Shown: one piece after another, positions 5,746 to 52,110 of the stretch | Layout of the letters: each line of letters starts with the position of its first letter | Numbering within the stretch: position 1 is the stretch's first letter | Position numbers and translations under genes: made by a program | The notes under the pieces: generated by a model | Database searches by the model: none | The model's input: the letters and a program-made list of their open reading frames with translations, nothing else | What the model was told of the DNA's origin: nothing | Assembly: GCF_032191835.1 (NCBI RefSeq) | Contig: NC_083227.1 | Span: 24,800,001-24,864,000, forward strand | DNA length: 64,000 nucleotides | Source: Heteronotia binoei | Taxonomy: Eukaryota | Direction: 5' to 3'

Positions 5746-7898
<2,153 letters not shown>

Positions 7899-7906
7899 TT
7901 ATCAGT

Positions 7907-10900
7907 CAATTAAACTAAATCTTGGGGGAAAGCCGATAGGAGATGAAATGTCTCTGGTTCGGGAGGACTCGTCTCAAAGAGATGAAGGGTTAGCTGCTAT
8001 TTTTCTACCGGGTAACGGACCGGAGTTGTCCACTGTGAAGGTGACAAACAATATGGACTGTCTGCCAGTGTCTCGAGGCGGCAGGAGGAAGGTGGCGGGC
8101 CTAGCTCGCCTGGGAAATTATAGATGTTTGTATGCAAATGCTAGAAGTGTTCAAAGTAAAATTGGTGAATTGGAATGTTTAGTGCTGGGAGAAAACATAG
8201 ACATTGTGGGAATTTCAGAAACTTGGTGGAATGAGGAGAATCAGTGGGACACGGTGATTCCTGGATATAAGCTATATCGGAAGGATAGGGAGGGAAGGGT
8301 TGGAGGTGGGGTGGCTCTGTATGTAAGAGAGGATATACGGTCCAGTAAGGCTGAGATCAGAGAATTAGATTCACTTTTAGAAATGCTTTGGGTTGAAATA
8401 GAGGGCCCAAAAGGAAATTTAACTATGGGAGTTTGTTATCGCCCACCAAATCAAAAGAGAGAGGACGATTATAATATGATGGAAGGCTTAAAGATAGCGG
8501 CTAAACGTAAAAACTGTGTTGTAATAGGTGATTTTAACTACCCGCAGATTGATTGGGTCAATATGTGTTCTGGTCGAGAGAAAGAGATTGAGTTTCTTGA
8601 TGCTCTCAATGACTGTGCTATGGAGCAGATGGTCTCAGAACCTACCAGGGGTGGGGCGATCCTGGATTTGGTCCTAAGTAATGCCCAAGACTTGGTGAGA
8701 GATGTAAAAGTGATTGCGCCGCTTGGGAGCAGTGACCATAATGTTATTGATTTCACCGTTTGTATAAATAGGGAGTTGTCCAAAAAGACCACCACAACCA
8801 CGTTTAACTTTAAAAGGGGTAAATACACTGAGATGAGGAGGCATGTGAGGAAGAAACTGAAAGGAAAGGTACATACGGTCAAAACCCTTGAGAAAGCTTG
8901 GACGCTATTTAAAACTATAATCCTAGAAGCTCAGATAAAATACATACCACAAGTTAGGAAAGGCACAAACAGGCATAAGAAAAGGCCTGCGTGGTTAACA
9001 AATAAAGTAATGGAAGCTGTAAAAGGTAAGAAGGACTCCTTTAAGCGGTGGAAAACCAGTCCAAGTGAGATTAGTAAAAGGGAACACAGGCTGTGGCAAA
9101 TCAAATGCAAGACTGTGATCAGGCAGGCAAAAAGGGACTATGAGGAGCATATTGCAAAAAACATAAAGACCAACAATAAAACTTTCTTCAAATATATTAG
9201 AAGTAGGAAACCAGCCAGGGAGGCAGTGGGGCCCTTGGATGACCATGGGGTAAAAGGATTACTGAAGGAGGATAGGGAAATGGCTGAAAAGCTAAATGAA
9301 TTTTTTGCCTCCGTCTTCACTGTAGAAGACGAGAACTTTTTGCCCGCCCCAGAACCACTAATTTTGGAAGGGGTGTTGAAAGACCTGAGTCAGATTGAGG
9401 TGACAAATGAGGAGGTCCTACAACTGATAGACAAATTAAAAACTAATAAGTCACCGGGTCCGGATGGCATACATCCGAGAGTTCTGAAGGAACTCAAAGT
9501 TGAACTTGTGGATCTTCTAACAAAAATCTGTAATCTTTCATTGAAATCTGCCTCCATTCCTGAGGACTGGAAGGTAGCAAATGTCACCCCCATCTTTAAA
9601 AAAGGTTCCAGAGGAGATCCGGGAAACTACAGGCCAGTCAGTCTGACTTCAATACCGGGAAAGTTGGTAGAAACCATTATCAAGGACAGAATGAGTAGGC
9701 ACATTGATGAACACGGGTTATTGAGGAAGACTCAGCATGGGTTCTGCAAGGGAAGATCTTGCCTCACTAACCTGTTGCATTTCTTTGAGGGGGTGAACAA
9801 ACATGTGGACAAAGGAGACCCGATAGATGTTGTTTACCTTGACTTCCAGAAAGCTTTTGATAAAGTTCCTCATCAAAGGCTCCTTAGAAAGCTTGAGAAT
9901 CATGGAGTAAAAGGACAGGTCCTCTTGTGGATCAAAAACTGGCTGAGTAATAGGAAGCAGAGAGTGAGTATAAATGGGCAGTCTTCGCAGTGGAGGGCGG
10001 TAAGCAGTGGGGTGCCGCAGGGCTCGGTACTGGGTCCCATGCTTTTTAACTTGTTCATAAATGATTTAGAGTTCGGAGTGAGCAGTGAAGTGGCCAAGTT
10101 TGCGGATGACACTAAATTGTTCAGGGTGGTGAGAACCAGAGAGGATTGTGAGGAACTCCAAAGGGATCTGTTGAGGCTGGGTGAGTGGGCGTCAACGTGG
10201 CAGATGCGGTTCAATGTGGCCAAGTGCAAAGTAATGCACATTGGGGCTAAGAATCCCAGCTACAAATACAAGTTGATGGGGTGTGAACTGGCAGAGACTG
10301 ATCAAGAGAGAGATCTTGGGGTCATGATAGATAACTCACTGAAAGTGTCAAGACAGTGTGCGTTTGCAATAAAAAAGGCCAATGCCATGCTGGGAATTAT
10401 TAGGAAGGGAATTGAAAACAAATCAGCCAGTATCATAATGCCCCTGTATAAATCGATGGTGCGGTCTCATTTGGAGTACTGTGTGCAGTTCTGGTCGCCG
10501 CACCTCAAAAAGGATATTATAGCTTTAGAGAAGGTGCAGAGAAGGGCAACTAGAATGATTAAAGGGCTGGAGCACTTTCCCTATGAAGAAAGGTTGAAAC
10601 GCTTGGGACTCTTTAGCTTGGAGAAACGTCGACTGCGGGGTGACATGATAGAGGTTTACAAGATAATGCATGGAATGGAGAAAGTAGAGAAAGAAGTACT
10701 TTTCTCCCTTTCTCACAATACAAGAACTCGTGGGCATTCGATGAAATTGCTGAGCAGACAGGTTAAGACGGATAAAAGGAAGTACTTCTTCACCCAAAGG
10801 GTGATTAACATGTGGAATTCACTGCCACAGGAGGTGGTGGCGGCCACAAGTATAGCCACCTTCAAGAGGGGTTTAGATAAAAATATGGAGCACAGGTCCA

Positions 10901-11063
10901 TCAGTGGCTATTAGCCACAGTGTATGGAGCACAGGTCCACCAGTGGCTATTAGCCACAGTGTATGTGTGTATATAACATTTTTTGCCACTGTGTGACACA
11001 GAGTGTTGGACTTGATGGGCCGTTGGCCTGATCCAACATGGCTTCTCTTATGTTCTTATGTTC
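7907..11063 (+). mobile_element. 5'-truncated CR1 LINE with intact ORF2
   Basis: Ends in a (TTCTTATG)n tail; candidate 8-bp TSD TTATCAGT at 7899-7906 and 11064-11071; 39-bp tandem duplication at 10884-10961. Confidence 0.92.
7948..10914 (+). CDS. CR1 ORF2: APE endonuclease + reverse transcriptase (988 aa)
   Basis: EN motifs YANARS, GISETWW, GDFNYP, SSDHNVI; RT motifs QHGF, YLDFQKAFD, GVPQGSVLGP, FADD; no stops. Confidence 0.95.
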   Translation: MSLVREDSSQRDEGLAAIFLPGNGPELSTVKVTNNMDCLPVSRGGRRKVAGLARLGNYRCLYANARSVQSKIGELECLVLGENIDIVGISETWWNEENQWDTVIPGYKLYRKDREGRVGGGVALYVREDIRSSKAEIRELDSLLEMLWVEIEGPKGNLTMGVCYRPPNQKREDDYNMMEGLKIAAKRKNCVVIGDFNYPQIDWVNMCSGREKEIEFLDALNDCAMEQMVSEPTRGGAILDLVLSNAQDLVRDVKVIAPLGSSDHNVIDFTVCINRELSKKTTTTTFNFKRGKYTEMRRHVRKKLKGKVHTVKTLEKAWTLFKTIILEAQIKYIPQVRKGTNRHKKRPAWLTNKVMEAVKGKKDSFKRWKTSPSEISKREHRLWQIKCKTVIRQAKRDYEEHIAKNIKTNNKTFFKYIRSRKPAREAVGPLDDHGVKGLLKEDREMAEKLNEFFASVFTVEDENFLPAPEPLILEGVLKDLSQIEVTNEEVLQLIDKLKTNKSPGPDGIHPRVLKELKVELVDLLTKICNLSLKSASIPEDWKVANVTPIFKKGSRGDPGNYRPVSLTSIPGKLVETIIKDRMSRHIDEHGLLRKTQHGFCKGRSCLTNLLHFFEGVNKHVDKGDPIDVVYLDFQKAFDKVPHQRLLRKLENHGVKGQVLLWIKNWLSNRKQRVSINGQSSQWRAVSSGVPQGSVLGPMLFNLFINDLEFGVSSEVAKFADDTKLFRVVRTREDCEELQRDLLRLGEWASTWQMRFNVAKCKVMHIGAKNPSYKYKLMGCELAETDQERDLGVMIDNSLKVSRQCAFAIKKANAMLGIIRKGIENKSASIIMPLYKSMVRSHLEYCVQFWSPHLKKDIIALEKVQRRATRMIKGLEHFPYEERLKRLGLFSLEKRRLRGDMIEVYKIMHGMEKVEKEVLFSLSHNTRTRGHSMKLLSRQVKTDKRKYFFTQRVINMWNSLPQEVVAATSIATFKRGLDKNMEHRSISGY

Positions 11064-11399
11064 TTATCAGTGAATTTATCCTTAATAGGATATATATGTG
11101 TGTGTGTATTTATTGGCAAACTGGACTTTATCTTAAATCCTAAATAATATTTTCTAGAAGGTTATATATACTATAGTACTTTATGCAAAGTAGAATTTTG
11201 CTATGCGTGGAATTAATCTACTTGACACTACTTCATCCAACAAGGTTCTGTATAACTTGGAATTTTCAATAAACTTTATCATATGTTGTTGTTATTTGTT
11301 TATTTATATTCTGCCCATTCCCCCGTTTGGGGGTTCTAAAAAAAGAAGAAGATCTCAATAGCTCAGCTGGGTTGACCAGGCCCTGATTAGTATTCAGAC

Positions 11400-11750
11400 A
11401 GGAGACCATCAAGAAAGTCCAGGGTTGCTATGTGGAGGCAGGCAAAATGGCAAACTACCCCTTTGCTCCATATGCTTATCCAGTACCCTCTTGAAACTGT
11501 CTATGCTTGCAGCCGCCACCACCTCCTGTGGCAGTGAATTCCACGTGTTAATTACCCTTTGGGAGAAGACGTACTTCCTTTTATCCATTCTAACCTGACT
11601 GCTCAGCAATTTCATTGAGTGCCCACGAGTTCTCGTATTGTGAGAAAGAGAGAAAAGAACTTCTTTCTCTGCCTTCTCTATCCCATGCATAATTTTGTAA
11701 ACCTCGATCATGTCACCCCTCAGTCAATGTTTCTCCAAGCTAAACTAGAG
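11400..11750 (-). mobile_element. CR1 3' coding fragment
   Basis: Minus ORF MIEVYKIMHGIEKAEKEVLF...NTWNSLPQEVV is nearly identical to the C-terminus of the 7948 ORF. Confidence 0.85.
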
Positions 11751-12279
11751 GTTGGCAGCCCTAGGAAGCAAAGATAGAGAGCCTGCATGTTTCTGGAGCA
11801 AAATAAGCAGCAGAAAAAGAGCCAGTCAGATATGGCAGCCGTGTTCTCTTATGAAATGGTTTTGTGGGAGAAACGTGAGCGGGCAAAAAGAGGTAAAACA
11901 GTTCCTCTTTACCAGACTCGCTTTATTTGTCAGAGGCTGGGTTGCAGGAGAGATAGTAGGAGAACACTGCCTCCCCACACTTTACACATGAACAGGGCAA
12001 ACCCAGTTATAAATATGTACACACAGGTAGGGAGGTATACATGGCTTGCCCTTCTTCATTTTATTCTCACAACAACTCTGTCAGGTAGGCTAGGCTCAAG
12101 GGAGCATGACTGGTCTAAGGTCAGTCTCAAGACAACTGAGAATTCGAACTGGGGTCTTTTACACAAGCAATTTTCCTCCCCACCCCATCCTGTCCAGTTT
12201 GGCCCACTGTGTAAGGATTTCATTTCCCTGCATACCTCTTTGGGAGTGAACTGAGAAGAATTGGGGATCTGGATCTAAC

Positions 12280-12382
12280 CTGGCAGCATTCTCAGGATCT
12301 TCCTGCATGACGTCCTTGCATGGGGTCCGTGTCCAATGAGCCACTTTAAAACATGCTTTGTGCACAGCTTTTGTTCAAGCTC
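12280..12382 (-). other. Candidate internal exon of ZNF gene 1 with degenerate KRAB-A-like sequence
   Basis: Acceptor GGTTTTTCAG, donor CAG|GTTAGA; one frame reads CKDVMQEDPENAARL (compare KRAB-A YKEVMQENYENVASL). Confidence 0.4.
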
Positions 12383-12615
12383 CTGAAAAACCAAGCAGGC
12401 TTGAATTAGTCACACATGAATAGATATAACTGAGAAACAAGCGACTGCTGTATATAAAATCCCTCTCCTCACTCATTGGGTGAGCTGCTGTGATGTCACA
12501 GAAGGGGCACCAGAATTCTAGTGCCAGAGAGTAAATAAGACAGGAGAACTATCAGCTGGTGAGACTCAAAGAAAAGGTTGGGTTTTGCTGATGGGGGAAA
12601 AAAAATCTACACTTG

Positions 12616-13191
12616 CAGGGGTGTCGAACTCATTTGTTATGCGGGCCGGATCTGACATAAATAAGACCTTGTTGGGATGGGCCATGTCAGGTTGGGCTGA
12701 GCCATGTCAGGCTTGGCCATGTGTGTACCTATTTAAGATTAGGTAGCGGAGATATAAATTTTATAAGGAACACAGACATTAAAACATTAGCACTCATTGG
12801 TCTTAAAGATGCTTTCTTTTTATTTCCTGGGGGAAAGGAAGCTCTGGCTCTTTCCTTCTTTCCCCAGGGGACTGGGGGGTGGGAGGAGCCTCAGCCAATA
12901 GAAGGAAGAGAGGCGTGACTCAATAGCTCTGCTGTGCAATCAAGAGAGCCTGGCAAAGCACGTTATTCCTCCCCCCTTCCTCCCCAAGGGAGGAGCCCTA
13001 ACCAGTGGAGAAAATACAGGTTTTGCTCTGTAGCTCCTGTGCAATTGAGCAAGCCTTATAAAGCAAGCTGTTATGCAGAAAGAAGCAAGATGTAGGGAGA
13101 AGGAAGCACATGACAGCCAGTTGCTTGGGGGCCTGATAGGAGACCTCTGGGGGTCTGACTCGGCCACCGAACTGCATGTTTGACACCCCTG
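12616..13191. mobile_element. Non-autonomous hAT-like element (CAGGGGTGTC(G/A)AAC TIR)
   Basis: TIR CAGGGGTGTCGAAC / GTTTGACACCCCTG; related copy at about 28600-29098; TSD not recognisable. Confidence 0.7.
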
Positions 13192-13707
13192 ATCTACAGG
13201 ACCCAGAAGAAGAGGGAATATGTGCCATAGGGAGGGGTGTAGGAAAGAATGGGGAGAGGGGTTCAGAAGACAACATTGTCTGGCTATTTATTTATTTTGT
13301 GTGTGTGTATGAGAGAGAGAGAGAGTGATCCTTGGTTGCCAGCAAGTTTCCATGGCAGAGTGGAGATATGAACACCCTGGATCCTAGTTCAACACGCTAA
13401 CTCCTGCATGCAAAAAGATGAAGAAGGATATAATCTTGGTGCAAAGGAGTCTGGAGACACCATGGAGGCTTATCAATCCTGCCTCCAGCTCTCCTATGCA
13501 ATTGCAATCCTACATTCTAACCCAAATTACTGGAATAGCAAAACCCAAGATTTACACCCAGCTTAAGGCATGTGAATTGTTAACCTCCATTCCGATAAAT
13601 CTTGCTGCTAGAAGACAGATTCAGGTGGTTAGCTCTGTTGGTCTGAGGCAACAGAACAAAGTTTGAGCCCAGTGGCACCATTAAGAATAAAGGTTTAATT
13701 TTAATAG

Positions 13708-13998
13708 GAGCCCCATGACGCAGAGTAGTAAAGTTGCAGTACTGCAGTCCAAGTTCCGCTCACAACCTAAGTTTGATCCCAATGGAAGCTGGATTCAGGT
13801 AGCCAGTTCATGGTTGACTCAGCCTTCCATCCTTCCAAGGTCGGTAAAATGAGTACCCAGCTTCCTGGGGGTCAAGCGTAGATGACTGGGAAAGGGAATG
13901 GCAAATTACCCCATAACAAGTCTGCCATGAAAATGTTGTGAAAGCAATGTCACCCTAGAGACAGAAATGACTGGCACTTGCACAGGGGACTACCTTTA
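13708..13998 (-). mobile_element. Sauria SINE (diverged)
   Basis: Reverse complement of the Sauria consensus: GGTTGACTCAGCCTTCCATCCTTCC...GCACAGGGGACTACCTTTA. Confidence 0.75.
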
Positions 13999-14006
13999 CT
14001 TGAGTC

Positions 14007-14449
14007 CAGAGGTCGTTTTGTAGAAAAATAGGTGGTGGAGCTCATTAGCATAACTCATTCGCAACCCAACACAAGAAAGGAGAGCCCTGGGCGAGTGAGG
14101 CCTGCTTGGGCTGACTAGAGATCCAGCCAACCCAAGCAGGTCTTGCTCGCCTGGGGCTCTCCTGGGCCACCCCCCCAACCCAGTCAAAAGGTCAGCAAGC
14201 CACCTGCCACCCAAAATCACATAAGAAGTGGAGAAAGGGTGACGTGGGCTTCTCCAGGGGTTAATGAGGGCTCCTGGGGGCATGGCAAAGCTCCTAGTGG
14301 CTGGCTAGCTGCCTGTTCTACTAATCCAGGGATTATTATGCAGCTGCACCTACTGTTCAATGAACAAGCTAGTTGGGGAGGAAGAGGGGGAGCCGTCAGA
14401 AAGGTTCAGGAGCTGTGCTCCTGTGAGCTCCTCCTGAATCTGAGGCCTG
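14007..14449 (-). mobile_element. Non-autonomous hAT-like element, 8-bp TSD
   Basis: TSD CTTGAGTC at 13999-14006 and 14450-14457. Confidence 0.8.
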
Positions 14450-14676
14450 CTTGAGTCTGTTTTAAAGGCTGAATTTTGTTTTAAAAGTTTAACTCTTAAT
14501 AAGCTTTTACGTGCATGCACGTTACCAGCAGATATGTGCCAAGGTGGCCTAGTCTCCCTCTGACTGCTGGTGCTGTCATAGTGAGGAAGCAGAAAGCAAA
14601 CGGACCACCAGCCCCCCCTACCTGAGGTGAGCTCATCCCAAGCCAATGGCATGTTCCCCTCGTGAGTTCCCCTCAC

Positions 14677-14893
14677 CTCTCCTGCCAGATCTGCAGCCAG
14701 ACCCGAATTTCCCCTGCTGCCCGGCTACTGCTCCAAGAGTTGCTGCTTCTCTAGGGGAAGCCAGTGTGGAGCTCCGCCCAATGGCACAACAGGAAAAGGC
14801 ATCATGATTTGCATCTCTCCGCCCCCTCCCCTGCTTGTCAAGTTTGTCTCTCTCTGGCCTTTCTAGGAGTTGAGCTGCGTCGCTTTAACCCTT
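14677..14893 (-). promoter_or_regulatory. Putative promoter/first non-coding exon of ZNF gene 1 (cassette copy A)
   Basis: Minus strand AAGGGTTAAA...CCTAGAAAGG, GC boxes, CCAAT, octamer at 14807-14814, and donor GGAGAG|GTGAGG at 14676. Confidence 0.5.
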
Positions 14894-14894
14894 G

Positions 14895-15200
14895 CAGAGT
14901 GATCCAGGTAGGCAGCCGCGTTGGTCTGAAGCAGTAGAACCTTTAAGTAGCACCTTTAAAACCAACAAACTTTTATTCGGAATGTAAGCTTTCGTGTGTG
15001 AATGCACACTTCTTCAGACGAGGAATGGGGTACAATAAGCAGAGCTACATATAGCTGCTGGGGTTTAGAATGCAAAGTGGTACAAAGTTAAAATCCAAAA
15101 GCAGAATAGTAAAATTAGGAAATTCAGAAAACCTTTGATCTGGGCTGCATTAGCATGGGAAACCAATAACACAGTCACATGTGAGAATGCCTGTTAATTA
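14895..15200 (-). mobile_element. Penelope-like element terminal (pLTR) fragment
   Basis: GTTGGTCTGAAGCAGTAGAAC...GCACCTTTAAAACCAACAAA...AAGCTTTCGTGTG..GCACACTTCTTCAGA; related pieces at about 13615-13700, 30810-30890, 36840-37010, 58465-58595, 61940-62070. Confidence 0.6.
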
Positions 15201-16217
15201 TTCTATTGCTAATGAGCCTGGGTCAAAATGAGGACATTTCTTTCCCAGAAGTTTTGCCTATCCAACTAATTTACCTTTTAACATGTAACATAAATAAATA
15301 TAATTCTAGTTTGCGATTATGAAAAAATGCATTAAAATATATTGGAGGATGGGTTTAGTATATGTAATGAGATAAACAACCAATATAAAATATCAGCCTC
15401 CCCTTTTTTTGTTTTGTTGTGTGTATATGTCTATATGTGTAAGTGTTTTGTCTCGACAAGACACTTATTCTATGCACATGCTTAATATTAATAACCTCAA
15501 TTGTAAGTTGACAGCACTAGATTAGTTTGAGCTTCAAAATCTGTTGACATTTATTTCATGATTGCATTGGATTTAGTCGATGGAGAATATTTTATATGTA
15601 TGGTTAATTAGTATTTTAATAAACATTTTGAATTACTTATTTTAAAAAAAACAAGGTTCAGAATCAAGTGCAAAGGTTTGGGGCCTGAAAGGTGGCTTTT
15701 ATGCATCTCTTGTTGCTTTGAGAAGGGGACAGTGTCTCTGCTCCAAAGGGATCTTATTGGAAGGTTGGGATATTTCACAAAGGATTTTGCATCTGAGTGG
15801 GGTGTGGGGGGGATGCCCAATTTTTAAAAAAGGTGGAATGTTTTAAACAAAACCTCTGTCTTATTTTAATGCATTTTTCTTTTAAGATGCTCATACCCTA
15901 AAGCAAAACGTTAACATAGCAACAAGAGAGGTGACAAGACAATTAAACAATGTGAAATAACATCCAGAGAGAGACATAGAAAGCCCTTAAGGGCAAAGCT
16001 AAGAAAAATCCAAAGAAAATATGAAAAACTAAACACCGAATTTCAATGCTGTCCCCCCCCCTTTAAAAAAACAATTTGGAACAGCTCTAAGACCAAGGGT
16101 AGGCAATTTTTATCCTCACAACCACCCTGCGAGGTAGGTTAAGCTGAGAGCATCTGATAGGCCTAGGGTCACCCAGCAAGCTTCTGTGGCAGAGTTGAGA
16201 TTTGAACTTGGGTCTCC

Positions 16218-16595
16218 CCAGGGCTTTTTTTTTTTTCAGAAAAAGCTCAGCAGGAGCTCATTTGCATGTTAGGCCACACACCCCTGACACAACCACTGTT
16301 TGCACAGGGCTGGCAGGAACTCATTTGCATATTAGGCCACGCCCATGATGTCAAGCCAACCAGAACTGCGTATACTGGCTAATGTCTAGTCTGACATTAG
16401 CCAGTATACCAAAACCAGGACCCAGATATATGAATAATACTTACCTTACAATGTTGTTGTATGGTTACAATAAAACCAGGGCCTTTTTTGAGCAGGAATG
16501 CATAGGAACATAGTTTCAGTTGGCTTGGTGTCAGGGGGTTTGGCCTAATATGCAAATAGATTCCTGGTGGGCTTTTTCTACAAAAAAAAAGCCCT
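16218..16595. mobile_element. Cluster of CAGGGCTTTTT-type MITE remnants
   Basis: CAGGGCTTTTT...CATTTGCATATTAGGCCAC and ...GGCCTAATATGCAAAT...AAAAAGCCCTG; contains octamer ATTTGCAT sites. Confidence 0.55.
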
Positions 16596-16776
16596 GAATA
16601 AAACAATGTATGTGAGGTGCTTGGAACATTCACTCTCAAATGTTATACAGAATCTCTATAATAGATTAGTTTTACTTCTCTTCAATCCCTGCCATCTCCA
16701 CTCTGAAACAAAGAAGGATCTCTTGTGCATTGGAGATTAAGAAAGACCTCTCTGGAGTTGAGACCTTGGGCCAACT

Positions 16777-16900
16777 AAAGGGTTAAAGCAGCTGAGTTTC
16801 CCATCCTTCTCTTCCTAGAGGGGCCAAAACACATCCCAGTGGATTCTTCCTCCTCAGGAGGAATCAGACAAAGAGCTGCCTTCAGTTCCTTCCGGTTGGC
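16777..16900 (+). promoter_or_regulatory. ZNF-cluster promoter cassette copy B, upstream of the ZBED ORF
   Basis: AAAGGGTTAA-N7-GAGTTTCC-N13-CTAGAGGGG plus 16/16 AGTTCCTTCCGGTTGG, shared with copy C at 29834-29951. Confidence 0.6.
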
Positions 16901-17112
16901 ATTTTTTTAAGAGCAGCTGCCGTGAATCAATAGGGGCTGCAGTTGCTGAGCTGAATGGAAGAGGTCTCGAGCGTTTTCATAAGGTTGTAGTTCATTTTTT
17001 AATTTAAAAAACAGCAAAATTGCAATACATAAGGTAGCCCTCCCCCCCCAACTCAAATAAGAAAGCATATTTTAAAGGAAACCCCCTTCCAAAGGAAGAT
17101 ATGGACAGAAAG

Positions 17113-17578
17113 TAGGGTTGCCAATCCCCAGGTGGGGGCAGGGGATCCCCCGGTTTGGAGGCTCTTCCCCCCGTTCAGGGTCAAAGTGGGGGTGGAGCAG
17201 GGATAAATCTCTGCTGGGCACTCTATTCCCTATGGAGACCAATTCCCATAGAGTATAATGGAGAATTGATCCACAGATATCTAGGGCTGGGGGGGGGGGC
17301 TGTTTTTTGAGGTAGAGGCACCAAATTTGTAGCATAGCATCCAGTGCCTCTCCTCAAAACACCCTCCAAGTTTCAAAAGAATTGGGCCAGGGGGTCCAGT
17401 TCTATGAGGCCCAAAATGAGGTCCCCCTATCCATTATTTTTAATGGAGGGACGGCATTGAAAAGGTGTGCAGTTCCTTTCAATGTGATGACCAGAACTCC
17501 ATTTGCTTGTCACAACCTTGCTCCTGGCTCCACCCCCAGAGTCTCCAGATATTTCTTGAATTGGACCTGACAACCCTA
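17113..17578. mobile_element. Non-autonomous hAT element with TAGGGTTGCCA TIRs
   Basis: TAGGGTTGCCA / TGACAACCCTA; TSD ACAGAAAG / GCAGAAAG (7/8); related copy at 56876-57399. Confidence 0.8.
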
Positions 17579-18454
17579 GCAGAAAGATATATATTGGCTG
17601 CAAGAAAGCAAGAACTGAAATGACAAGCCCAGCAGGCTCATGACTTTGAAAAGAGAGAGGAAGAGTAGATAATGCAATACCCAAGTTACCCACCCACACA
17701 CAGGATGCTTCACCCCCCCCCCCTCCCCAGGGCAAGAGGAAATCAATTCCCCACAGAATTCCCTCTCTTCGAGGCACAAAGCAAGGAAAGATGCAAATGA
17801 GACAAAATGTGGGAAATCTCGAAAATCATCAAACCACCCCAGGAAATCCTTTAGCTCATCCCCACATTCTTAGGGGGCATCTACAGTCCCACTGAGAAAG
17901 ATGGACCAGAAATGAAAATCATCACAGAATTTAAAAGCCCTTTTTTTGATTCTCAGGTAGTTTTCTCCATCACTTTAAATTGGCCAATTCTTCACTAGAC
18001 CTTTAATCCTGGTTCAGCCTCGTCCCCAAACTGACATTCTACACTTAAATCGTGGAACCATAGAAACCCTCTCTATGAGCTTACGATTCTGTGATTCTAG
18101 TGTAGAAAATCAGTGTGGGGACAGGACTGTACTAGGATTAAAGGTCTAGTGTGGAATTGGCCTTTTTTTCCAAAGCACCCATTCAGGAAATGCTATGTTC
18201 TCCAGGCAGGTCTTCTTGACAATTCACCCATTTCTGCTTTTGTTCTTTGCAGCTCCACTGATGAGTCAGAGGGTTCCAGAACCATGCTGAAATCCTGCAA
18301 CTCATTTGCGGGCTCTGTCATATGAATGCTCCAGCCGTTGCCTTTCCAGGTACTGCAAGACCTTGGATATAATTGCTGTTACTAAATCTGTTAAGAGATT
18401 TCTTTTGTAGGTGTTTTCACACCCTAAAATGACATTGTGGCTTCTGCTCACTTA

Positions 18455-18745
18455 GAATAGAATCATAGAGTTGGAAGGGACCTCCAGGGTCATCTAGTCC
18501 AACCCCCTGCACAATGCAGGAAACTCACAAATACCTTCCCCTAAATTCACAGGATCTTCATTGCTGTCAGATGGCCATCTTGCCTGTTTAAAAACCTCCA
18601 AGGAAGGAGAGCCCACCACCTCCTGAGGAAGCCTGTCCCACTGAGGAACCGCTCTAACGGCGAGGAAGTTCTTCCTAATGTTGAGCCGGAAACTCTTTTG
18701 ATTTCATTTCAACCCATTGGTTCTGGTCCTACTTCCTGAGGCCAC
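18455..18745 (-). mobile_element. CR1 3' end (second subfamily)
   Basis: TAGAATCATAGAGTTGGAAGGGACC...GTCATCTAGTCCAACCCC tail, the reverse complement of the canonical CR1 (ATTCTRTG)n end. Confidence 0.75.
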
Positions 18746-19726
18746 AGAAAGCTTCCCTCCTTCCTGGGGGCTGTCAATGTCAGCTGTTAGTTGGGGCTTG
18801 GAGAGAGGGTTGCCAGGTTTGACTCAGAAATATCTGGGGAACTTTGGGGGCGGAGCCAGGAGCAAGGGTGTCTTAAGCATGATTGAACTCCAAAGGGAGT
18901 TCTGGCCATCACATTTAAAGGGAAACGCCTTCCAAAGGAAGAGATGGGCAGAAAGATATATATTGGGTGCAAGGAAGAACTGAAATGACAAGCCCAGTAG
19001 GCACATGACTTGGAAGGGAGGGAGGAAGAGTAGATACGCAATACCCAAGTCACACACCCACACCTGGTGCTTCACCCCCTCTAGGCAGGGCTGGATTAAC
19101 AATTAGGCCAAGTAGGCACTGGCCTATGGCCCCCACACCTTTAGGAGCCCCAGAATGGCTCTCCTCCCATTTCCCGCCCTGCTTGCAGCCCTCCCAGCCT
19201 CCACACGCAGCCAGCTTCTGGGAAGACAGCAAGCAGGCGGAAAACCAGGGGGGAAAGCCAGCCTGGGGCCCTAAAGGCATGGGGGCCATAGGCCAGTGCC
19301 TACATGGTCTAATTGTTAATCCAGCCTTGCCGCTTGGTCTCATCTGGCAGGGCTCTTCTGGTGTTTGTATTCAAACTCAAGTAGATAATCATGAAAGATG
19401 ACTGGTGAGGCAAGGGGAATCTTTTTGGTGAGAGCTGGAACAGTCCTTCCTTCTTTAAATCTCTCGACTTCTGCCTCTCTTTTGTCCCCCATGCCTATTT
19501 CTACCCCACCCCCCATATACTTCTCTGCCTAAACCTGAGCTTTCGTTGCCACTGATTTGTCCATCTCTAGTATGAGCAATATGTCAAAAATAAAAATACG
19601 TGCCTGTAGAACATATTTACATCATTTAAAAATATTTTCTTTATTTATAAGCTGCCTTTCTTCCCAGTGGGGAGCCAAAGCGGCTTATATTGTTTTCCTC
19701 TGCTCCTTTTTTATCTTTGCAACAAC

Positions 19727-19897
19727 CAGGGGTAGAATTCTAGCAGGAGCTCCTTTGCATATTAGGCCACACACCCATGATGTAGCCAATCCTCCAAGAG
19801 CTTTAAAAAAAGAGCCCTATAAGCTCTTGGAGGATTGGCTACATCAGGGGTGCGTGGCCTAATATGCAAAGGAGCTCCTGCTAGAATTCCACCCCTG
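19727..19897. mobile_element. 171-bp palindromic hAT MITE, 8-bp TSD
   Basis: Near-perfect hairpin; TSD GCAACAAC at 19719-19726 and 19898-19905. Confidence 0.88.
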
Positions 19898-20093
19898 GCA
19901 ACAACCCTGTGAGACAGGTGAGGCTAAGACTGTGTGACTGGCCCAAGGTTACCCAGCAAGTTTCCCTGGCAGAGTGGGAATCAAACTTGTGTTTCCCAGA
20001 TCTTAATCTGACCTTTTAACCAAGATACCACACCTGCTGTTTAGGTCACTGAGTACTGTTACTCTGTGAGAGCAGAAATATTTATTGTATATA

Positions 20094-20372
20094 GAGCCAG
20101 TTTGGTGTAGTGATTAACTGTGCGGACTCTCATCTGGGAGAACCAGGTTTGATCCCCCACTCCTCCACTTGCACCTGCTGGAATGGCCTTGGGTCAGCCA
20201 TTGCTATCGCAGGAGTTGTCCTTGAAAGGGCAGCTTCTGTGAGAGCTCTCTCAGCCCCACCCACCTCACAGAGTATCTGTTGTGGGGGAAGAAGATAAAG
20301 GAGATTGTAAGCCACTCTTGAGTCTCTGATTCAGAGAGAAAGGCGGGGTATAAATCTGCAATCGTTGTCGTC
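20094..20372 (+). mobile_element. tRNA-derived SINE family A
   Basis: AGAGCCAGTTTGGTGTAGTG head, B box GGTTTGATCCCC. Confidence 0.8.
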
Positions 20373-20528
20373 TAAAGGCCATCACAATGGAAAATCAAGC
20401 GCATAATCTGTTACTCTGTGTCAGCATAGGATTTGAATTGGTTGCAGGTCTTAATCTTCAGTGGCACAAACTGTATCCCTTCAGGTGGGTAACTGCCTTT
20501 TACAAAATCTGTTTTCAGGAATCCAAAC

Positions 20529-23033
20529 ATGAAGCGCCTCACGCGGTCTGCCATCGCCTCAGGCGCCATTACCATGGTAGCTCCAGAGATGCTCCCGAGA
20601 CCTTATCGGTGCCGCAGAACTCTCACCACAGACAAAGCCACGGTGCCCTTGGAGCACAATTTGTCTCAGGTGGTGAAAAAGACTGAGGATCCCGCCTCCC
20701 AGATGTGTTTGGAACTTCCTGACTCTAAGCTGCTCGCAGCTGATCTGAAGATGGAGGGTGTTGAAGGGGAGGAGCTGGGTTTGCCCACAGTGGCTCCCTA
20801 TCATACCGTCACCTTGTGGGAATGCCCGGCGAGTAACCCCGCCTCGACGTCAGGTGTGTGCAGCGCAGAATCGGAGCTCACCCCCTCGCCGCCAAAGCGC
20901 CGGAGGACCACGTCCTACGTGTGGGAGCACTTCAGCATCGACAACCGAGACAGGTTCGTGGTCGTGTGCAACCGTTGCCGAATGCGGGTGAGGCTTGGCA
21001 AGGAGGGTGGTTGCGGGAGGGTCGGGACCTCCGCTATGCACAAACACCTGCAGATCCACCACCCTTTCCTCGTGCTGCCAAAGAAGGATGGGGTGGCATC
21101 TCCAGGGGTCACGCCAGTAGCAAAGTCCCCCCAGAACACGACGACCACACCGGATCTGGCATCGCCACGAACTGCCGGGGTGGAGTCAACAACATTGCAA
21201 CTGACTGCTGATGAGCTGCGGGAGGGAAACCAATACCTTTCTCCGTTTGACCCTCTGGCTCTGCAGTACAACAGATTTTTGGCCGAGTATCTGGCTGAAG
21301 GGATGTTGCCCTACTCCACTGTAGAGGAACCTTCATTTCTGAGGATGCTGAAGCACCTCCAACCAGGTTGGAGAGTCCCTGGACACACCTACTTTGCAAC
21401 CCGTGCTGTCCCGGCTTTGTCAGCTGCGATCAAGACTGCCATGCAACGTGAGTTAGAGCTATCCATTGACCCAGTGGTGCCCCTCGCAGTAAGCATCTGG
21501 ACTAGCAACAGGAGGCAGGACTACATGACAGTGACGGCCCACTGGGTCTTGGACACAGTCGGTGTTCTGGTCCGGCGCCGTGCCACCCTGGCCGTGTGCA
21601 GCTTTGAAGAGAGTCCCGCCACCGGCAGTATCGCCCGTAAGATGAAAGCGGTGGTCAGCCAGTGGCTGGACCCCTTGCACCGGGAAGCACGCTATGTGGC
21701 TTGTGATGGTGGGGCCACCATGGAAAAGGCAATGGCGGATTCCAATCTGCATCCCATCCCTTGCATCTCCCGCTGCCTTGATCTGGTCGTGGAGAGGGTG
21801 TTGGAGCAGGCTGGTACGGAGGTCGATAGGGTACTGGGGAAGGCTCAGAAAGTTGTCAGCCACTTCCAAAGGTCACGCAAAGCCCGCCGCCGTCTGGCAG
21901 AGCTTCAGGCCCTGCACAGTCTCCCGCAAGAGCCACTGAGACTCAACGAGCAGGATCCAGTTGGGTGGAACACCACCCTTGAGATGGTGGAGCAACTGTG
22001 CACTCACCAGCGAGCCGTCGACGATTACCTGATTGAGAACAGGGAGCTCTGTCTGACATCCAGGGACTGGAGGCTGATGCGGGAGGTGGTGCGGCTGCTG
22101 GAAGTCTTTAAGGAGGCCACCGGTGTCATTCTCCGCAGAGATAACGCGACTCTGGGCCATGTCCTGCCCTTACTCCGTGTCATTGAAGGGTACGTGGAGG
22201 ACTTCTTGGATCAGGCCCGTCAACAGGGCGATGATGGCGCAGCAGCTGCCTGTCTGGCATCTGACTTACTGCAGGCCCTGAACGAGAGCAGACAATTGAC
22301 CGAGGTCAAGGGAAATATACTTTACCAAGCGGCAAGCTTCCTAGACCCTCGTTTCAAGGACTCCATGTCCCAGTTTTTGGTGGGGGATGCAGAGTACCAG
22401 ATTGAGGCTGTAAAGGAGCATGTGATCCAGCTGACGACGACAGAGGTGTGTCAGAAAAACCTGCCCCTGGACAAATCCATCAGTGGCCTCGAGGGGTCTC
22501 CAGCACTTGAAGAAGCACTGTTGTCTCCTCTGCCCCCGACGGGCAGCACCTCCTCGTGCTCGTCCCCTGAGAGCAGTGGCATTTGGACAAAATGGTGTGT
22601 GAGGCTTGGCTTGACTAAGGCTCCACACCCCAGTTCTGGGTCCCCCCCAGATGCCGCGTTGGTAGCCAGAGAAGAGGTGGGGGCCTACGTACGGGATTAT
22701 GTCGGATACATCGGGGCAAATACAGACCCCTTAATCTACTGGCAGCGGAAGCGGCATGCCTGGCCCTCTCTCTTCCTCGTGGCCCTCCGCTACGCCTCCT
22801 GCCCTCCCACCAGCATCTCTTCCAAGACGCTTTTCAGTGCCGCAGTGCCTGACATGAATGCGAATCTGGCTCGCCTCTCTCTTAACACTGCTGAGGTTCT
22901 GTCGTTCATCCGCATGAATCGGCAGTGGATTCCGGAAGGCTTTATGGCCCCACCTCCTATTTCCATAAATAGGAGGGTGAACCCCCCACACACTGAGGAT
23001 GATGGGAAGGAGGAGGAACCTGTGTTGGCCTGA
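20529..23033 (+). CDS. ZBED-like protein: BED finger + hAT (Ac-type) transposase core + hATC dimerisation domain, predicted catalytically inactive (834 aa)
   Basis: NLS-like PPKRRR; BED finger SYVWEHF...CNRC...GTSAMHKHLQIHH; hAT motifs IWTS, CDGG, WNTT, LDPRFK, DPLIYW...WPSL...PPTSISSKTLFS; single ORF; acceptor TGTTTTCAG at 20510-20518. Confidence 0.9.
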   Translation: MKRLTRSAIASGAITMVAPEMLPRPYRCRRTLTTDKATVPLEHNLSQVVKKTEDPASQMCLELPDSKLLAADLKMEGVEGEELGLPTVAPYHTVTLWECPASNPASTSGVCSAESELTPSPPKRRRTTSYVWEHFSIDNRDRFVVVCNRCRMRVRLGKEGGCGRVGTSAMHKHLQIHHPFLVLPKKDGVASPGVTPVAKSPQNTTTTPDLASPRTAGVESTTLQLTADELREGNQYLSPFDPLALQYNRFLAEYLAEGMLPYSTVEEPSFLRMLKHLQPGWRVPGHTYFATRAVPALSAAIKTAMQRELELSIDPVVPLAVSIWTSNRRQDYMTVTAHWVLDTVGVLVRRRATLAVCSFEESPATGSIARKMKAVVSQWLDPLHREARYVACDGGATMEKAMADSNLHPIPCISRCLDLVVERVLEQAGTEVDRVLGKAQKVVSHFQRSRKARRRLAELQALHSLPQEPLRLNEQDPVGWNTTLEMVEQLCTHQRAVDDYLIENRELCLTSRDWRLMREVVRLLEVFKEATGVILRRDNATLGHVLPLLRVIEGYVEDFLDQARQQGDDGAAAACLASDLLQALNESRQLTEVKGNILYQAASFLDPRFKDSMSQFLVGDAEYQIEAVKEHVIQLTTTEVCQKNLPLDKSISGLEGSPALEEALLSPLPPTGSTSSCSSPESSGIWTKWCVRLGLTKAPHPSSGSPPDAALVAREEVGAYVRDYVGYIGANTDPLIYWQRKRHAWPSLFLVALRYASCPPTSISSKTLFSAAVPDMNANLARLSLNTAEVLSFIRMNRQWIPEGFMAPPPISINRRVNPPHTEDDGKEEEPVLA

Positions 23034-23659
23034 GTCGTCAACAGATAATTGTGGGACTCTAGTCTTCAAGCCTCTTTTGTTATCGGTGTCTTTTTTACGT
23101 AAAGACCCCTCTAGAATGGTGTATAAAATATGAGCAGTTGAATTAGGATTGGTGGACCAGTTAAATCGGGAGTATTTGTCTTCTCTCTTTGTTTTCTTTT
23201 CGTTTTTGAGTGGGGCAGGTGATGTTTCCTGGCTCTCAAGCCCAGCACTTGAGCAAAGCTTCTCCTACTGGCCACCTGCTAGAATTGCATCTCGATACAG
23301 GAAGCATTGGCCTTTAAAAACTGCTGGTTTTTTTCCCCCCTGTGACTTTCCTTTAATTTTATTTAAAAAAAAAAAAAAGCACTAACACTGTAACCGTAGG
23401 CTGAGTTCTGGTGTTCCAGGCTAAAAGCTGCTGACCAAAAAAAGTATTCTGCCAATCATTCATATTTCTACAAATATCAAGTAACCTTATTAAATGTTTG
23501 TAATTTATTAAAATTTCTTTTTTAAAAGTTAACTTGAATTCCTTTGCAGCAAACTCCTGTGTGGCATGATGATTGTTTGCATCAAAACTGCTGATGATTA
23601 AAGCAACTTTTCAAGTTAATTTATTGATAAATAAAGGTAGACAGGTGAACCGCTGTAGT

Positions 23660-24158: not shown

Positions 24159-24329
24159 CAGGGGTGGAATTCTAGCAGGAACTCCTTTGCATATTAGGCC
24201 ACACACCCCTGATACAGCCAATCCTCCAAGAGCTTACGAGGCTCTTTTTTGTAAGCTCTTGGAGGACTGGCTACATCAGGGGTGTGTGGCTTAATATGCA
24301 AAGGAGCTCCTGCTAGAATTCCACCCCTG
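24159..24329. mobile_element. 171-bp palindromic hAT MITE, 8-bp TSD
   Basis: TSD TAAACAAG at 24151-24158 and 24330-24337. Confidence 0.88.
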
Positions 24330-49902: not shown

Positions 49903-50945
49903 GTGGGGTTTTGTGAATGCCACTTTACGCAAACAGACCCACAATTATTAGGGTGGCACAGCAAAACCTTCATCTTCTACATATATAGTTGGGGGGAGGA
50001 GAGTGTTTTTTACCTAGGCATTTTTTATTATGCATGATTTTTTTGTTTGTTTCTTTATCCCCCACCCCAAACAACAGCATTTTTTAAAAAAAACCCCTTA
50101 ATGTTGCAGAACCTGTTTTCAGTGTTATCAGACGCTTATCAAAATCGACTGAAGCATTAAAAAAAATCATTCCCGTTTGATATGGGGTTATGTGCCGATT
50201 TCCACCAGGCTGGGCTTCAGGTCTTTTAACATGTGATCCACTGAGGGTTATACATTTTGGACCTCTTGTGAGGTACCTCAAGAGTTCTCAAAAAGAACAG
50301 GCACAGATGTTTGACATTTAGTTTTTTTTTAAAATGCACGATGAGTGCACTTCTTATTTCTGCAGGGTGAGTTTATTTGAATACGGCTGCTGAATGTATG
50401 CTAAGCTGCCGCTTAAATTATGTTTTATTGCTAGTGGATTGTTTACGTTACACTGTAGGTGGATCTCTTTGACGGCTGCCGTGGGATTCTTTGATTTGAG
50501 AACACAAGGTGGAAATATTTCATGTAAATAGGTTTGCCAGGCCTCAGGGTATGGCCTAGTTTCCCAGGCTTTGGATCTCTAGGGAAAAGAGTAAGATCTT
50601 GGCCTGCGATGCAAAAAGGAGGGGCTGTTTTCTAACTAGTGAGTAATCTTTGCTAACTCAACTCATTAGACCAACCCTAAAGTGACCTAGAATGTCAGAC
50701 TAGGTAGATTAACCATCCTCCACATGGGGCCTGAGGATCTCCTAGAATTGTAGCTCATCTCCGGACTACAGAGATCAGTTCACTTGAAGAAAATGGGAGC
50801 TGTGGAGAATGGACTCTGTGACCCAGGGTGACCCAGTCAATTTGGTTTACCTAGACTTCAAGAAATCTTTTGATAAAGTTCCTCGTCAAAGGCTCCTCAG
50901 TCAATTCAACAGTTGTGGGATAAGAAGGCAAGTCCTCTTATGTGG

Positions 50946-52110
50946 ACATGTGGACAAAGGAGACCCGATAGATATTGTTTACCTTGACTTCCAGAAAGCT
51001 TTTGATAAAGTTCCTCATCAAAGGCTCCTTAGTAAGCTTGAGAGTCATGGAGTAAAAGGACAGGGCCTCTTGTGGATCAAAAACTGGCTAATTAATAGGA
51101 AGCAGAGAGTGAGTATAAATGGGCAGTCTTCGCAGTGGAGGATGGTAAGCAGTGGAGTGCCGCAGGGCTCAGTACTGGGTCCCATGCTCTTTAACTTGTT
51201 CATAAATGATTTGGAGTTGAGAGTAAGCAGTGAAGTGGCCAAGTTTGCAGATGACACTAAATTGTTCAGGGTGGTGAGAACCAGAGAGGATTGTGAGGAA
51301 CTCCAAAGGGATCTGTTGAGGCTGGGTGAGTGGGCGTCAACGTGGCAGATGAGGTTCAATGTGGCAAAATGCAAAGTAATGCACATTGGGGCCAAGAATC
51401 CCAGCTACAAATACAAGTTGATGGGGTGTGAACTGGCTGAGACTGACCAAGAGAGAGATCTTTGGGTCATGGTAGATAACTCATTGAAAATGTCAAGATT
51501 GCAATAAAAAAGGCCAATGCCATGCTGGGAATTATTAGGAAGGGAATTGAAAACAAATCAGCCAGTATCATAATGCTCCTGTATAAATCGATGGTGCGGT
51601 TTCATTTGGAATACTGTGTGCAGTTCTGGTCACCGCACCTCAAAAAGGATATTATAGCATTGGAAAAAGTGCAGAAAAGGGCAACTAGAATGATTAAAGG
51701 TTTGGAACACTTTCACTATGAAGAAAGGTTAAAATGCTTGGGGCTCTTTAGCTTGGAGAAAAGTCGACTGCAGGGTGACATGATAGAGGTTTACAGGATT
51801 ATGCATGGGATGGAGAAGGTAGAGAAAGAAGTACTTTTCTCCCTTTCTCTCAATACAAGAACTTGTGGGCATTCAATGAAATTGCTGAGCAGTCGGGTTA
51901 GAACGGATAAAAGGAGGTACTTCTTCACCCAAAGGGTGATTAACATGTGGAATTCACTGCCACAGGAGGTGGAGGCGGCTACAAGCATAGCCAGCTTCAA
52001 GAGGGGGTTAGATAAAAATATGGAGCAGAGGTCCATCAGTGGCTATTAGCCACAATGTGTGTATATATATATTGGCCTGATCCAACATGGCTTCTCTTAT
52101 GTTCTTATGT
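50946..52110 (+). mobile_element. Young 5'-truncated CR1 (RT C-terminal half, frameshifted near 51500)
   Basis: ORFs 50809-51507 and 51522-52049 are nearly identical to the 7948 ORF2; (TTCTTATG)n tail. Confidence 0.9.

Follow-up and report, generated by a model that had tools for sequence, protein, structure and literature searches.

We analyzed a stretch of 64,000 nucleotides from the genome of the gecko Heteronotia binoei (NCBI RefSeq assembly GCF_032191835.1, contig NC_083227.1, positions 24,800,001 to 24,864,000, forward strand); this whole stretch is the window, and positions are counted from its first nucleotide. Nucleotides 20529-23033 (+) of the window are an uninterrupted open reading frame (ORF) of 834 aa followed by TGA, and this ORF is a gene derived from a transposase of the hAT superfamily. 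The gene is immobile, old, and selectively maintained, and its product is a complete hAT transposase in structure; as judged from alignments, four residues that the Hermes transposase needs for cleavage and hairpin chemistry are missing. The gene and its immediate surroundings comprise the following features (ω is dN/dS, the ratio of nonsynonymous to synonymous divergence; NLS, nuclear localization signal; UTR, untranslated region; pLDDT, predicted local distance difference test score):

16656-17102, 17582-17975, 18199-18452, and 19460-19727, plus strand: four non-repeat upstream blocks, collinear with both Sphaerodactylus and Paroedura

20510..20518, plus strand: acceptor-like polypyrimidine-AG motif, TGTTTTCAG, 10 nt before the ATG

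20529..23033, plus strand: complete coding sequence (CDS) of the hAT-derived gene, 834 aa and TGA, one exon

20529..20885, plus strand: N-terminal region (aa 1-119), predicted to be disordered, weakly constrained (ω ~0.38), without an 18-aa stretch found in three other geckos

20886..21074, plus strand: NLS-like PKRRR (aa 121-125) and single BED finger (aa ~128-182), ω ~0.02

21234..21968, plus strand: helical pre-core and N-terminal half of the RNase-H-like core (aa 236-480)

21492-21494, plus strand: codon of S322, altered site

21705-21707, plus strand: codon of D393, retained site

21771-21773, plus strand: codon of R415, altered site

21963-21965, plus strand: codon of G479, altered site, next to the retained W480

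21969..22493, plus strand: all-helical insertion domain (aa 481-655) that splits the RNase-H fold as in Hermes, with an LDPRFK motif, pLDDT >90

22665..22943, plus strand: hATC/C-terminal part of the core (aa 713-805), ω ~0.21

22824-22826, plus strand: codon of K766, in place of the catalytic Glu

23179..23635, plus strand: conserved 3′ flank (to ~23605) and then the first plus-strand AATAAA (23630-23635), candidate 3′UTR

The domains of the ORF protein were located with Pfam, which identifies a BED zinc finger (zf-BED, aa 130-179, E 3.6e-5) and the hAT dimerization region (Dimer_Tnp_hAT, aa 732-795, E 2.5e-6) and finds no domain in aa 1-127, a region that is predicted to be disordered. A phmmer search of the PDB aligns aa 292-531 and 728-794 with the Hermes transposase (E 2.4e-6). 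In this alignment, D180 of Hermes is paired with S322, H268 with R415 (CxxH becomes CISR, with the Cys kept), R318-W319 with G479-W480 (the Trp is retained), and E572 with K766; the second Asp, D248, is retained as D393. The catalytic columns of a family alignment of 69 sequences agree with the Hermes alignment, and the codon positions were verified. Accordingly, the DDE triad (S322/D393/K766), the CxxH motif (CISR), and the RW motif (GW) of an active hAT element are not intact in the window protein, and its descent from the Ac-like part of the hAT superfamily is recorded in the BED finger, the RNase-H-like core that is split by a helical insertion, and the hATC region. The observed/expected CpG ratio is 0.57 in the ORF vs 0.29 across the whole window, and 20500-21250 resembles a CpG island.

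A first-pass annotation, made by a model from the letters of the window, had described a 2.5-kb ORF without stop or frameshift, the four changes at transposition-critical positions with D393 kept, an NLS-like motif (PKRRR here, PKRR[R/K] in the orthologues), a C-terminal hATC dimerization block, CpG richness of the ORF, and an acceptor-like motif immediately before the ATG; all of these are present as described, although splicing at the acceptor-like motif is putative. It had also described a complete BED finger with an H-x-H ligand pair; the finger is complete and there is one of it, but from the family consensus (GTxxLxxHLxxxH) the zinc ligands are probably C147, C150, H173, and H178, that is, H173/H178 are more likely than the H-x-H pair.

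The predicted structure is that of a whole transposase. The AlphaFold model, built on an alignment of 84 sequences, has pLDDT mostly >90 over the BED finger and over aa 225-655 and 686-830, with disorder at aa 1-127, 188-221, and 656-685. When the PDB is searched with this model, all 12 matches at E <0.001 are Hermes chains (best E 1e-14; template-modeling (TM) score by target ~0.70). The window protein shares domain order, fold, and insertion domain with Hermes of Musca domestica (PDB 2bw3, 4d1q, 6dww, and 8edg); it differs in having S, R, G, and K in place of D180, H268, R318, and E572, and its gene is single-copy and without terminal inverted repeats (TIRs). In a fold search of reviewed proteins, ZBED6, ZBED4, and ZBED1 lead the list, the plant SLEEPER proteins and Ac come next, and the Buster-type ZBED5 ranks lower; this ranking supports the earlier assignment of the gene as Ac-like rather than Buster.

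A six-frame search of the 2.63-Gb Heteronotia binoei genome finds the window gene once (100% identity); the next matches are at 40% (locus L002), 35% (L003), and 34% (L004), and below these lies a large genomic family at ~30% identity to the window protein. No pair of TIRs or target-site duplications (TSDs) that brackets the ORF was detected. The sole long inverted pair that flanks the ORF (171 nt, 19727-19897/24159-24329) was considered as the ends of an element and rejected: its arms are two copies, 92% alike, of a palindromic 172-bp miniature inverted-repeat transposable element (MITE) located at 19726-19898 and 24159-24329. With >2000 candidates in the genome at 94-96% identity, the MITE family is young; the two window copies are later insertions, because the block of synteny with other geckos stops exactly at 19727, where the upstream MITE starts. 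(RNA reads pile up on this MITE.) The TIRs, 8-bp TSD, and multiple copies that characterize an active element are all missing from the window gene; the lack of a TIR/TSD pair had been noted in the first-pass annotation, and the many near-identical copies with TIRs/TSDs that it gave as evidence against a host gene were not found.

The neighbors of the gene are a C2H2 zinc-finger (ZNF) exon upstream (5746-6879, minus strand), a long interspersed nuclear element (LINE), and two downstream genes with SCAN and multi-finger C2H2 parts (SCAN-ZNF genes; 32901-33989/42390-43574 and 54934-55887/60697-61491, both plus strand), so the gene does lie in a ZNF cluster, as had been proposed. The ORF2 of the LINE (7948-10914, plus strand) is open over 988 aa and encodes an endonuclease and a reverse transcriptase (RT); a second RT-bearing LINE copy (50809-52049, plus strand) is fragmented. 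The description of the window ORF as intact amid mostly decayed transposable elements (TEs) is correct as to the ORF, but with the LINE ORF2 also open it is not the sole intact TE-type ORF in the window.

In a protein database search, the close relatives of the window protein are from Sphaerodactylus townsendi (76%), Paroedura picta (72%), and a Logan contig of run SRR13336341 (79%); both of the NCBI proteins carry the predicted name 'ZBED6-like', and both are encoded by an intact CDS in one exon. The Sphaerodactylus and Paroedura loci are collinear with the flanks of the window gene, upstream over five or more blocks and downstream over a 3′ block and the SCAN-ZNF gene. Collinearity with Paroedura includes the upstream ZNF and the first SCAN exon; of these two, only the SCAN exon was matched in Sphaerodactylus. 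The orthologue from the fourth gecko is on a 2.9-kb contig, too short to judge synteny. The upstream blocks within 16656..19727 are candidate promoter or 5′UTR elements; in blastn searches (including word size 7) these conserved blocks have no paralogy elsewhere in the window, where only short interspersed nuclear element (SINE)/MITE repeats were matched.

The four gecko proteins align end to end, with S322, D393, R415, G479, W480, and K766 invariant and with the same or synonymous codons at the substituted sites (AGC, CGC, GGR, and AAG); their BED fingers are near-identical, with one Asn/Asp difference. We calculated dN/dS by the method of Nei and Gojobori (NG86), with bootstrap, for the six pairs of the four sequences; the values are 0.21-0.33 in all six pairs (bootstrap upper bounds ≤0.43) at dS 0.36-0.81. 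By region, ω is ~0.02 for the NLS and BED finger, ~0.2 for each of the pre-core, RNase-H half, insertion domain, and hATC, and ~0.4-0.5 for the disordered N-terminus, linker, and tail. The first-pass annotation had proposed to look for a single-copy syntenic orthologue, for dN/dS per domain that is not near 1, and for S322/R415/G479/K766 in other species; each was found, and the gene has both the syntenic single-copy orthologues and the purifying selection that are expected of a domesticated gene.

These data bear directly on whether the ORF is a recently immobilized or slowly decaying transposon copy that has no host function and is open by chance. The full transposase architecture and very low expression (vide infra) could be read in this way, but an 834-codon frame that is open in four species at dS up to 0.81 with dN/dS of 0.2-0.3, in a gene that is single-copy and syntenic and has a near-invariant BED finger, makes such a copy very improbable.

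The name 'ZBED6-like' implies a further explanation, that is, that the gene is an orthologue of ZBED1, ZBED4, or ZBED6/ZBED6CL, and these proteins (ZBED6, ZBED4, and ZBED1) are indeed the nearest reviewed proteins by fold. The sequences argue otherwise. When 1.84 billion representatives were searched exhaustively with HMMER, identity fell directly from 77% in the gecko orthologues to 40% in the next matches; true ZBED6 (Moschus, 30%) and ZBED4 (27-28%) are far down the match list, and structure-based alignment to human ZBED1/4/6 gives 19-22% identity. In a tree of 46 rows, which took in no named ZBED1 sequence, the four gecko sequences are a clade (100%) inside a clade of 16 lepidosaur and tick rows (98%), and the ZBED4 and ZBED6 clades are separated from the gecko gene by a branch with 99% SH-aLRT support (SH-like approximate likelihood ratio test).

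Architecture and location agree with the tree. ZBED4 has four BED fingers, and the window protein has one. Hayward et al. (2013; PMC3606216) describe two BED domains in ZBED6 and give DHRSX, ALG12, or ZC3H11A (intron 1) as the genomic setting of the known ZBED genes; none of these three genes is among the neighbors in the 64 kb that was examined, where the neighbors are instead ZNF and SCAN-ZNF genes. We regard orthology with any of these ZBEDs as having practically no chance of being correct, and the proposal that the gene is not ZBED4 or ZBED6 is upheld by the supported branch, the sequence identity of 27-30%, and the different locus. An independent squamate domestication had also been suggested; the independence from ZBED4 and ZBED6 stands, but the orthologues were found at the level of geckos and not across squamates.

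As an analogy, the ZBEDs are instructive. Like the window gene, ZBED6/4/1 encode BED finger(s), a transposase core, and hATC in one coding exon and are single-copy and constrained (PMC3606216), and ZBED4, like the window protein, has lost the first catalytic Asp (Gly in P0010/P0011). They differ in that Hayward et al. (2013; PMC3606216) report the DDE triad to be conserved across ZBEDs, whereas the window protein has substitutions at two of its three residues, and in being vertebrate- or placental-wide, whereas the window gene is gecko-restricted and not orthologous.

The nearer relatives were placed with a tree of 31 rows, in which the gecko clade (100/100) and three further clades make up a group with poor internal resolution: an expansion of six divergent paralogues in Hemicordylus capensis; SCAN/KRAB fusions (L003 of Heteronotia, with Eublepharis, Sceloporus, and Phrynocephalus); and L002 of Heteronotia with its gecko orthologue and tick proteins. 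The best topology joins the gecko gene with Hemicordylus (71/93.6) and is not secure, with the alternative of gecko plus L002/tick not rejected (p-AU, approximately unbiased test, 0.28).

L002 (also L026; C5:17872767-17875493, minus strand), the nearest paralogue at 40%, is single-copy with all catalytic motifs kept, and may be a domesticated hAT gene that is possibly still catalytic; it is 83% identical to a protein from SRR13336341, the run that also holds the orthologue of the window gene. L003 (C5:20760804-20762921, plus strand) is single-copy, has Arg for the first Asp, and pairs with the SCAN-KRAB-ZNF-BED-hAT fusion LOC129329364 of Eublepharis. L004 (C15:12797818-12799794, plus strand), also single-copy, groups on a long stem with proteins from Salvator and Varanus; its His and Trp motifs are lost. 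Like the window gene, these three are single-copy open frames of the same lepidosaur hAT clade; they differ from it in sequence (34-40% identity) and in catalytic state, with L002 having fully catalytic motifs, L003 having lost only the first Asp, and L004 having lost His and Trp. The window gene, L002, and L003, that is, three of the four single-copy relatives, are within 7 Mb of one chromosome, and several domesticated lineages, the window gene among them, come from one lepidosaur hAT clade.

Three candidates for closer kinship were set aside. P0016 of Hemicordylus has Ser at the site of the first Asp and Lys at that of Glu, as in the gecko gene, and was considered as a non-gecko orthologue; however, the clade in which it lies consists of six paralogues, all from Hemicordylus, and Asp and Glu are still present in some of them, so the shared Ser/Lys states are convergent. 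The flanks of P0016 have no nucleotide similarity to the gecko loci. P0041, the Rhineura floridana protein LOC133381080 (SCAN, two BED fingers, and a partial transposase), is closest to L002 (49%) vs 40% for the window gene. A hAT pair at C5:18.33 Mb, 6.45 Mb away on the same chromosome, consists of two open frames that have no tblastn similarity to the window gene and belong to a different lineage, so this chromosome region holds independent domestications.

Two groups of this clade deserve mention on their own account. On CM050090.1, one chromosome of Hemicordylus capensis, there are at least six highly divergent 'ZBED4-like' paralogues (L024; P0016, P0018, P0023, P0026, P0038, and P0056); five have closely spaced accession numbers, and the single clade with assorted losses of catalytic residues is a lineage-specific expansion. 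The tick proteins P0012, P0005, and P0028 (Ixodes and Dermacentor), annotated as ZBED4 or hAT-25-like, nest in the lepidosaur clade beside L002 (100/100); near-identical copies are found on several Ixodes scapularis contigs, the tick sequences have non-canonical residues in place of the second Asp and of the RW Arg, and the lineage may have passed horizontally between ticks and reptiles.

The Heteronotia genome also contains a young multi-copy hAT family (loci L005-L020, e.g., L016:943-3774) with at least 45 open ORFs of ~940 aa that have D, D, E, CxxH, RW, BED, and hATC intact, in copies with 95-98.5% DNA identity over >5 kb; from these features, the family seems to be a transposon that is, or until recently was, active in Heteronotia binoei. 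Such a family would provide a target if the window gene encodes a transposon-control protein, that is, a dead transposase that competes for hAT ends or poisons the transposase by heteromerization (dominant-negative). A location in a ZNF cluster would fit genome defense, the BED finger is the best conserved part and hATC is well conserved while catalysis is dead, and L002, the nearest paralogue, has lost none of the catalytic motifs. However, the live family is ~30% identical to the window protein overall (34% in BED and 35% in hATC), so shared recognition of ends or heterodimers are unlikely; L002 is itself single-copy and conserved and is no mobile target; and retention through dS of 0.36-0.81 would exceed a typical transposon burst. 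We consider transposon control to be unlikely as the function of the window gene.

The acceptor-like motif raises the question of whether the ORF forms the final exon of a host-transposase fusion, with an upstream SCAN or KRAB exon spliced in frame at 20518/20519. Both the Sphaerodactylus and the Paroedura orthologue conserve the motif as TGTTT[T/G/C]CAG, the 12 codons that precede the ATG in frame contain no stop, and several relatives are SCAN/KRAB-BED-hAT fusions (P0007 of Eublepharis, P0008 of Sceloporus, P0041 of Rhineura, and L003 of Heteronotia itself). Against this, the Met1 codon and the N-terminus MKRLTRS are conserved in all four geckos, the Sphaerodactylus and Paroedura gene calls begin at the same ATG as a one-exon CDS, and tblastn with the SCAN, KRAB, and ZNF parts of the relatives finds nothing at 7000-20500, only separate neighboring genes; with Pfam finding no SCAN or KRAB match in the ORF, no host effector domain was detected in the ORF (Pfam) or upstream (tblastn). 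The DNA-binding domains of transposases have recurrently been captured as vertebrate regulators, usually with KRAB and SCAN as partners (Cosby et al., bioRxiv 10.1101/2020.05.07.082677); the window gene is like these fusions in reusing a transposase and in having such fusions as relatives, and differs in keeping the whole transposase without a detected host domain. A fusion is, in our judgment, unlikely and somewhat less probable than transposon control.

The RNA data are thin. In three raw RNA-seq runs labeled as the same species, of which ~6% of each was used, depth across the ORF is ~0.5-4, and contigs from a metatranscriptomic run cover 21789-23304 with 0-6 differences. The non-repeat stretch 19273-19666 has no RNA coverage, and the high depths upstream are all on repeats. 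Over 20455-20651 there is almost no read depth and no joint is listed, which with so few reads is evidence neither for nor against splicing; the Logan contig L023 matches the genome collinearly through the acceptor, beginning at the equivalent of 20477, and is either unspliced or genomic, so it does not bear on splicing. These observations give weak support for low-level transcription of the ORF.

We conclude, with a probability of roughly 0.75, that the window gene is a host gene of the gecko lineage that arose from an Ac-like hAT transposase and has been kept as a ZBED-type regulator rather than as an enzyme. On this view, a copy of an Ac-like hAT element was immobilized at the ZNF/SCAN-ZNF locus before the Gekkonidae-Sphaerodactylidae split and lost its terminal repeats, the first Asp and the Glu of the triad, and the His and Arg of the CxxH and RW motifs; it has since been held under purifying selection. 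Most likely, the protein enters the nucleus via the PKRRR motif, its near-invariant single BED finger binds specific DNA, and its dead, still-folded, constrained core with hATC is an oligomerization or protein-interaction scaffold; nuclear DNA binding, oligomerization, and a regulatory role are predictions from this architecture. The first-pass annotation had proposed a co-opted transcription factor or a transposase inhibitor; the evidence supports the domestication that both assume, and for the choice between them we infer that a BED-directed DNA-binding regulator is the most likely role.

Several observations weigh against this conclusion. Expression is weak, and at the thin depth available (~6% of each run) neither transcript ends nor splice joints were seen. 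The Heteronotia copy is without 18 N-terminal residues and ends 6 residues early (CAA to TGA) relative to the other geckos; both losses lie in weakly constrained parts. The Eublepharis proteome, which was in the searched database, returned no protein closer than 33%, and some geckos may lack the gene or an annotation of it.

Transposase domestication is a recognized source of vertebrate transcription factors; to our knowledge, few cases have been documented in reptiles. Our literature search returned general papers on ZBED genes and on transposase capture and none on the gecko gene, whose orthologues had already been predicted by NCBI; this analysis corrects the misleading automatic name 'ZBED6-like' that they carry. 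The gecko gene is a real but fairly ordinary case of transposase domestication. With the same inactivating codons in four species, ω of ~0.02 for the BED finger, and a constrained core, it is the non-catalytic transposase body itself that is under selection.

On a wider and admittedly speculative reading, which we think improbable although somewhat less so than transposon control, one lepidosaur-tick hAT lineage seeded at least four domesticated squamate genes, several of them within the ZNF/SCAN-ZNF region of a single chromosome, and the window gene is a nuclease-dead member that joined the neighboring SCAN-ZNF genes in a network of TE surveillance or regulation; if true, it would be a BED-based counterpart of the KRAB/SCAN zinc-finger repressors, beyond another ZBED-type factor. 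Together, the catalytically intact single-copy paralogue, the SCAN/KRAB-fused paralogue, and the live hAT family in one genome are a natural series that could show which of three steps, the loss of the ends, the loss of catalysis, or fusion, make a host factor out of a transposase.

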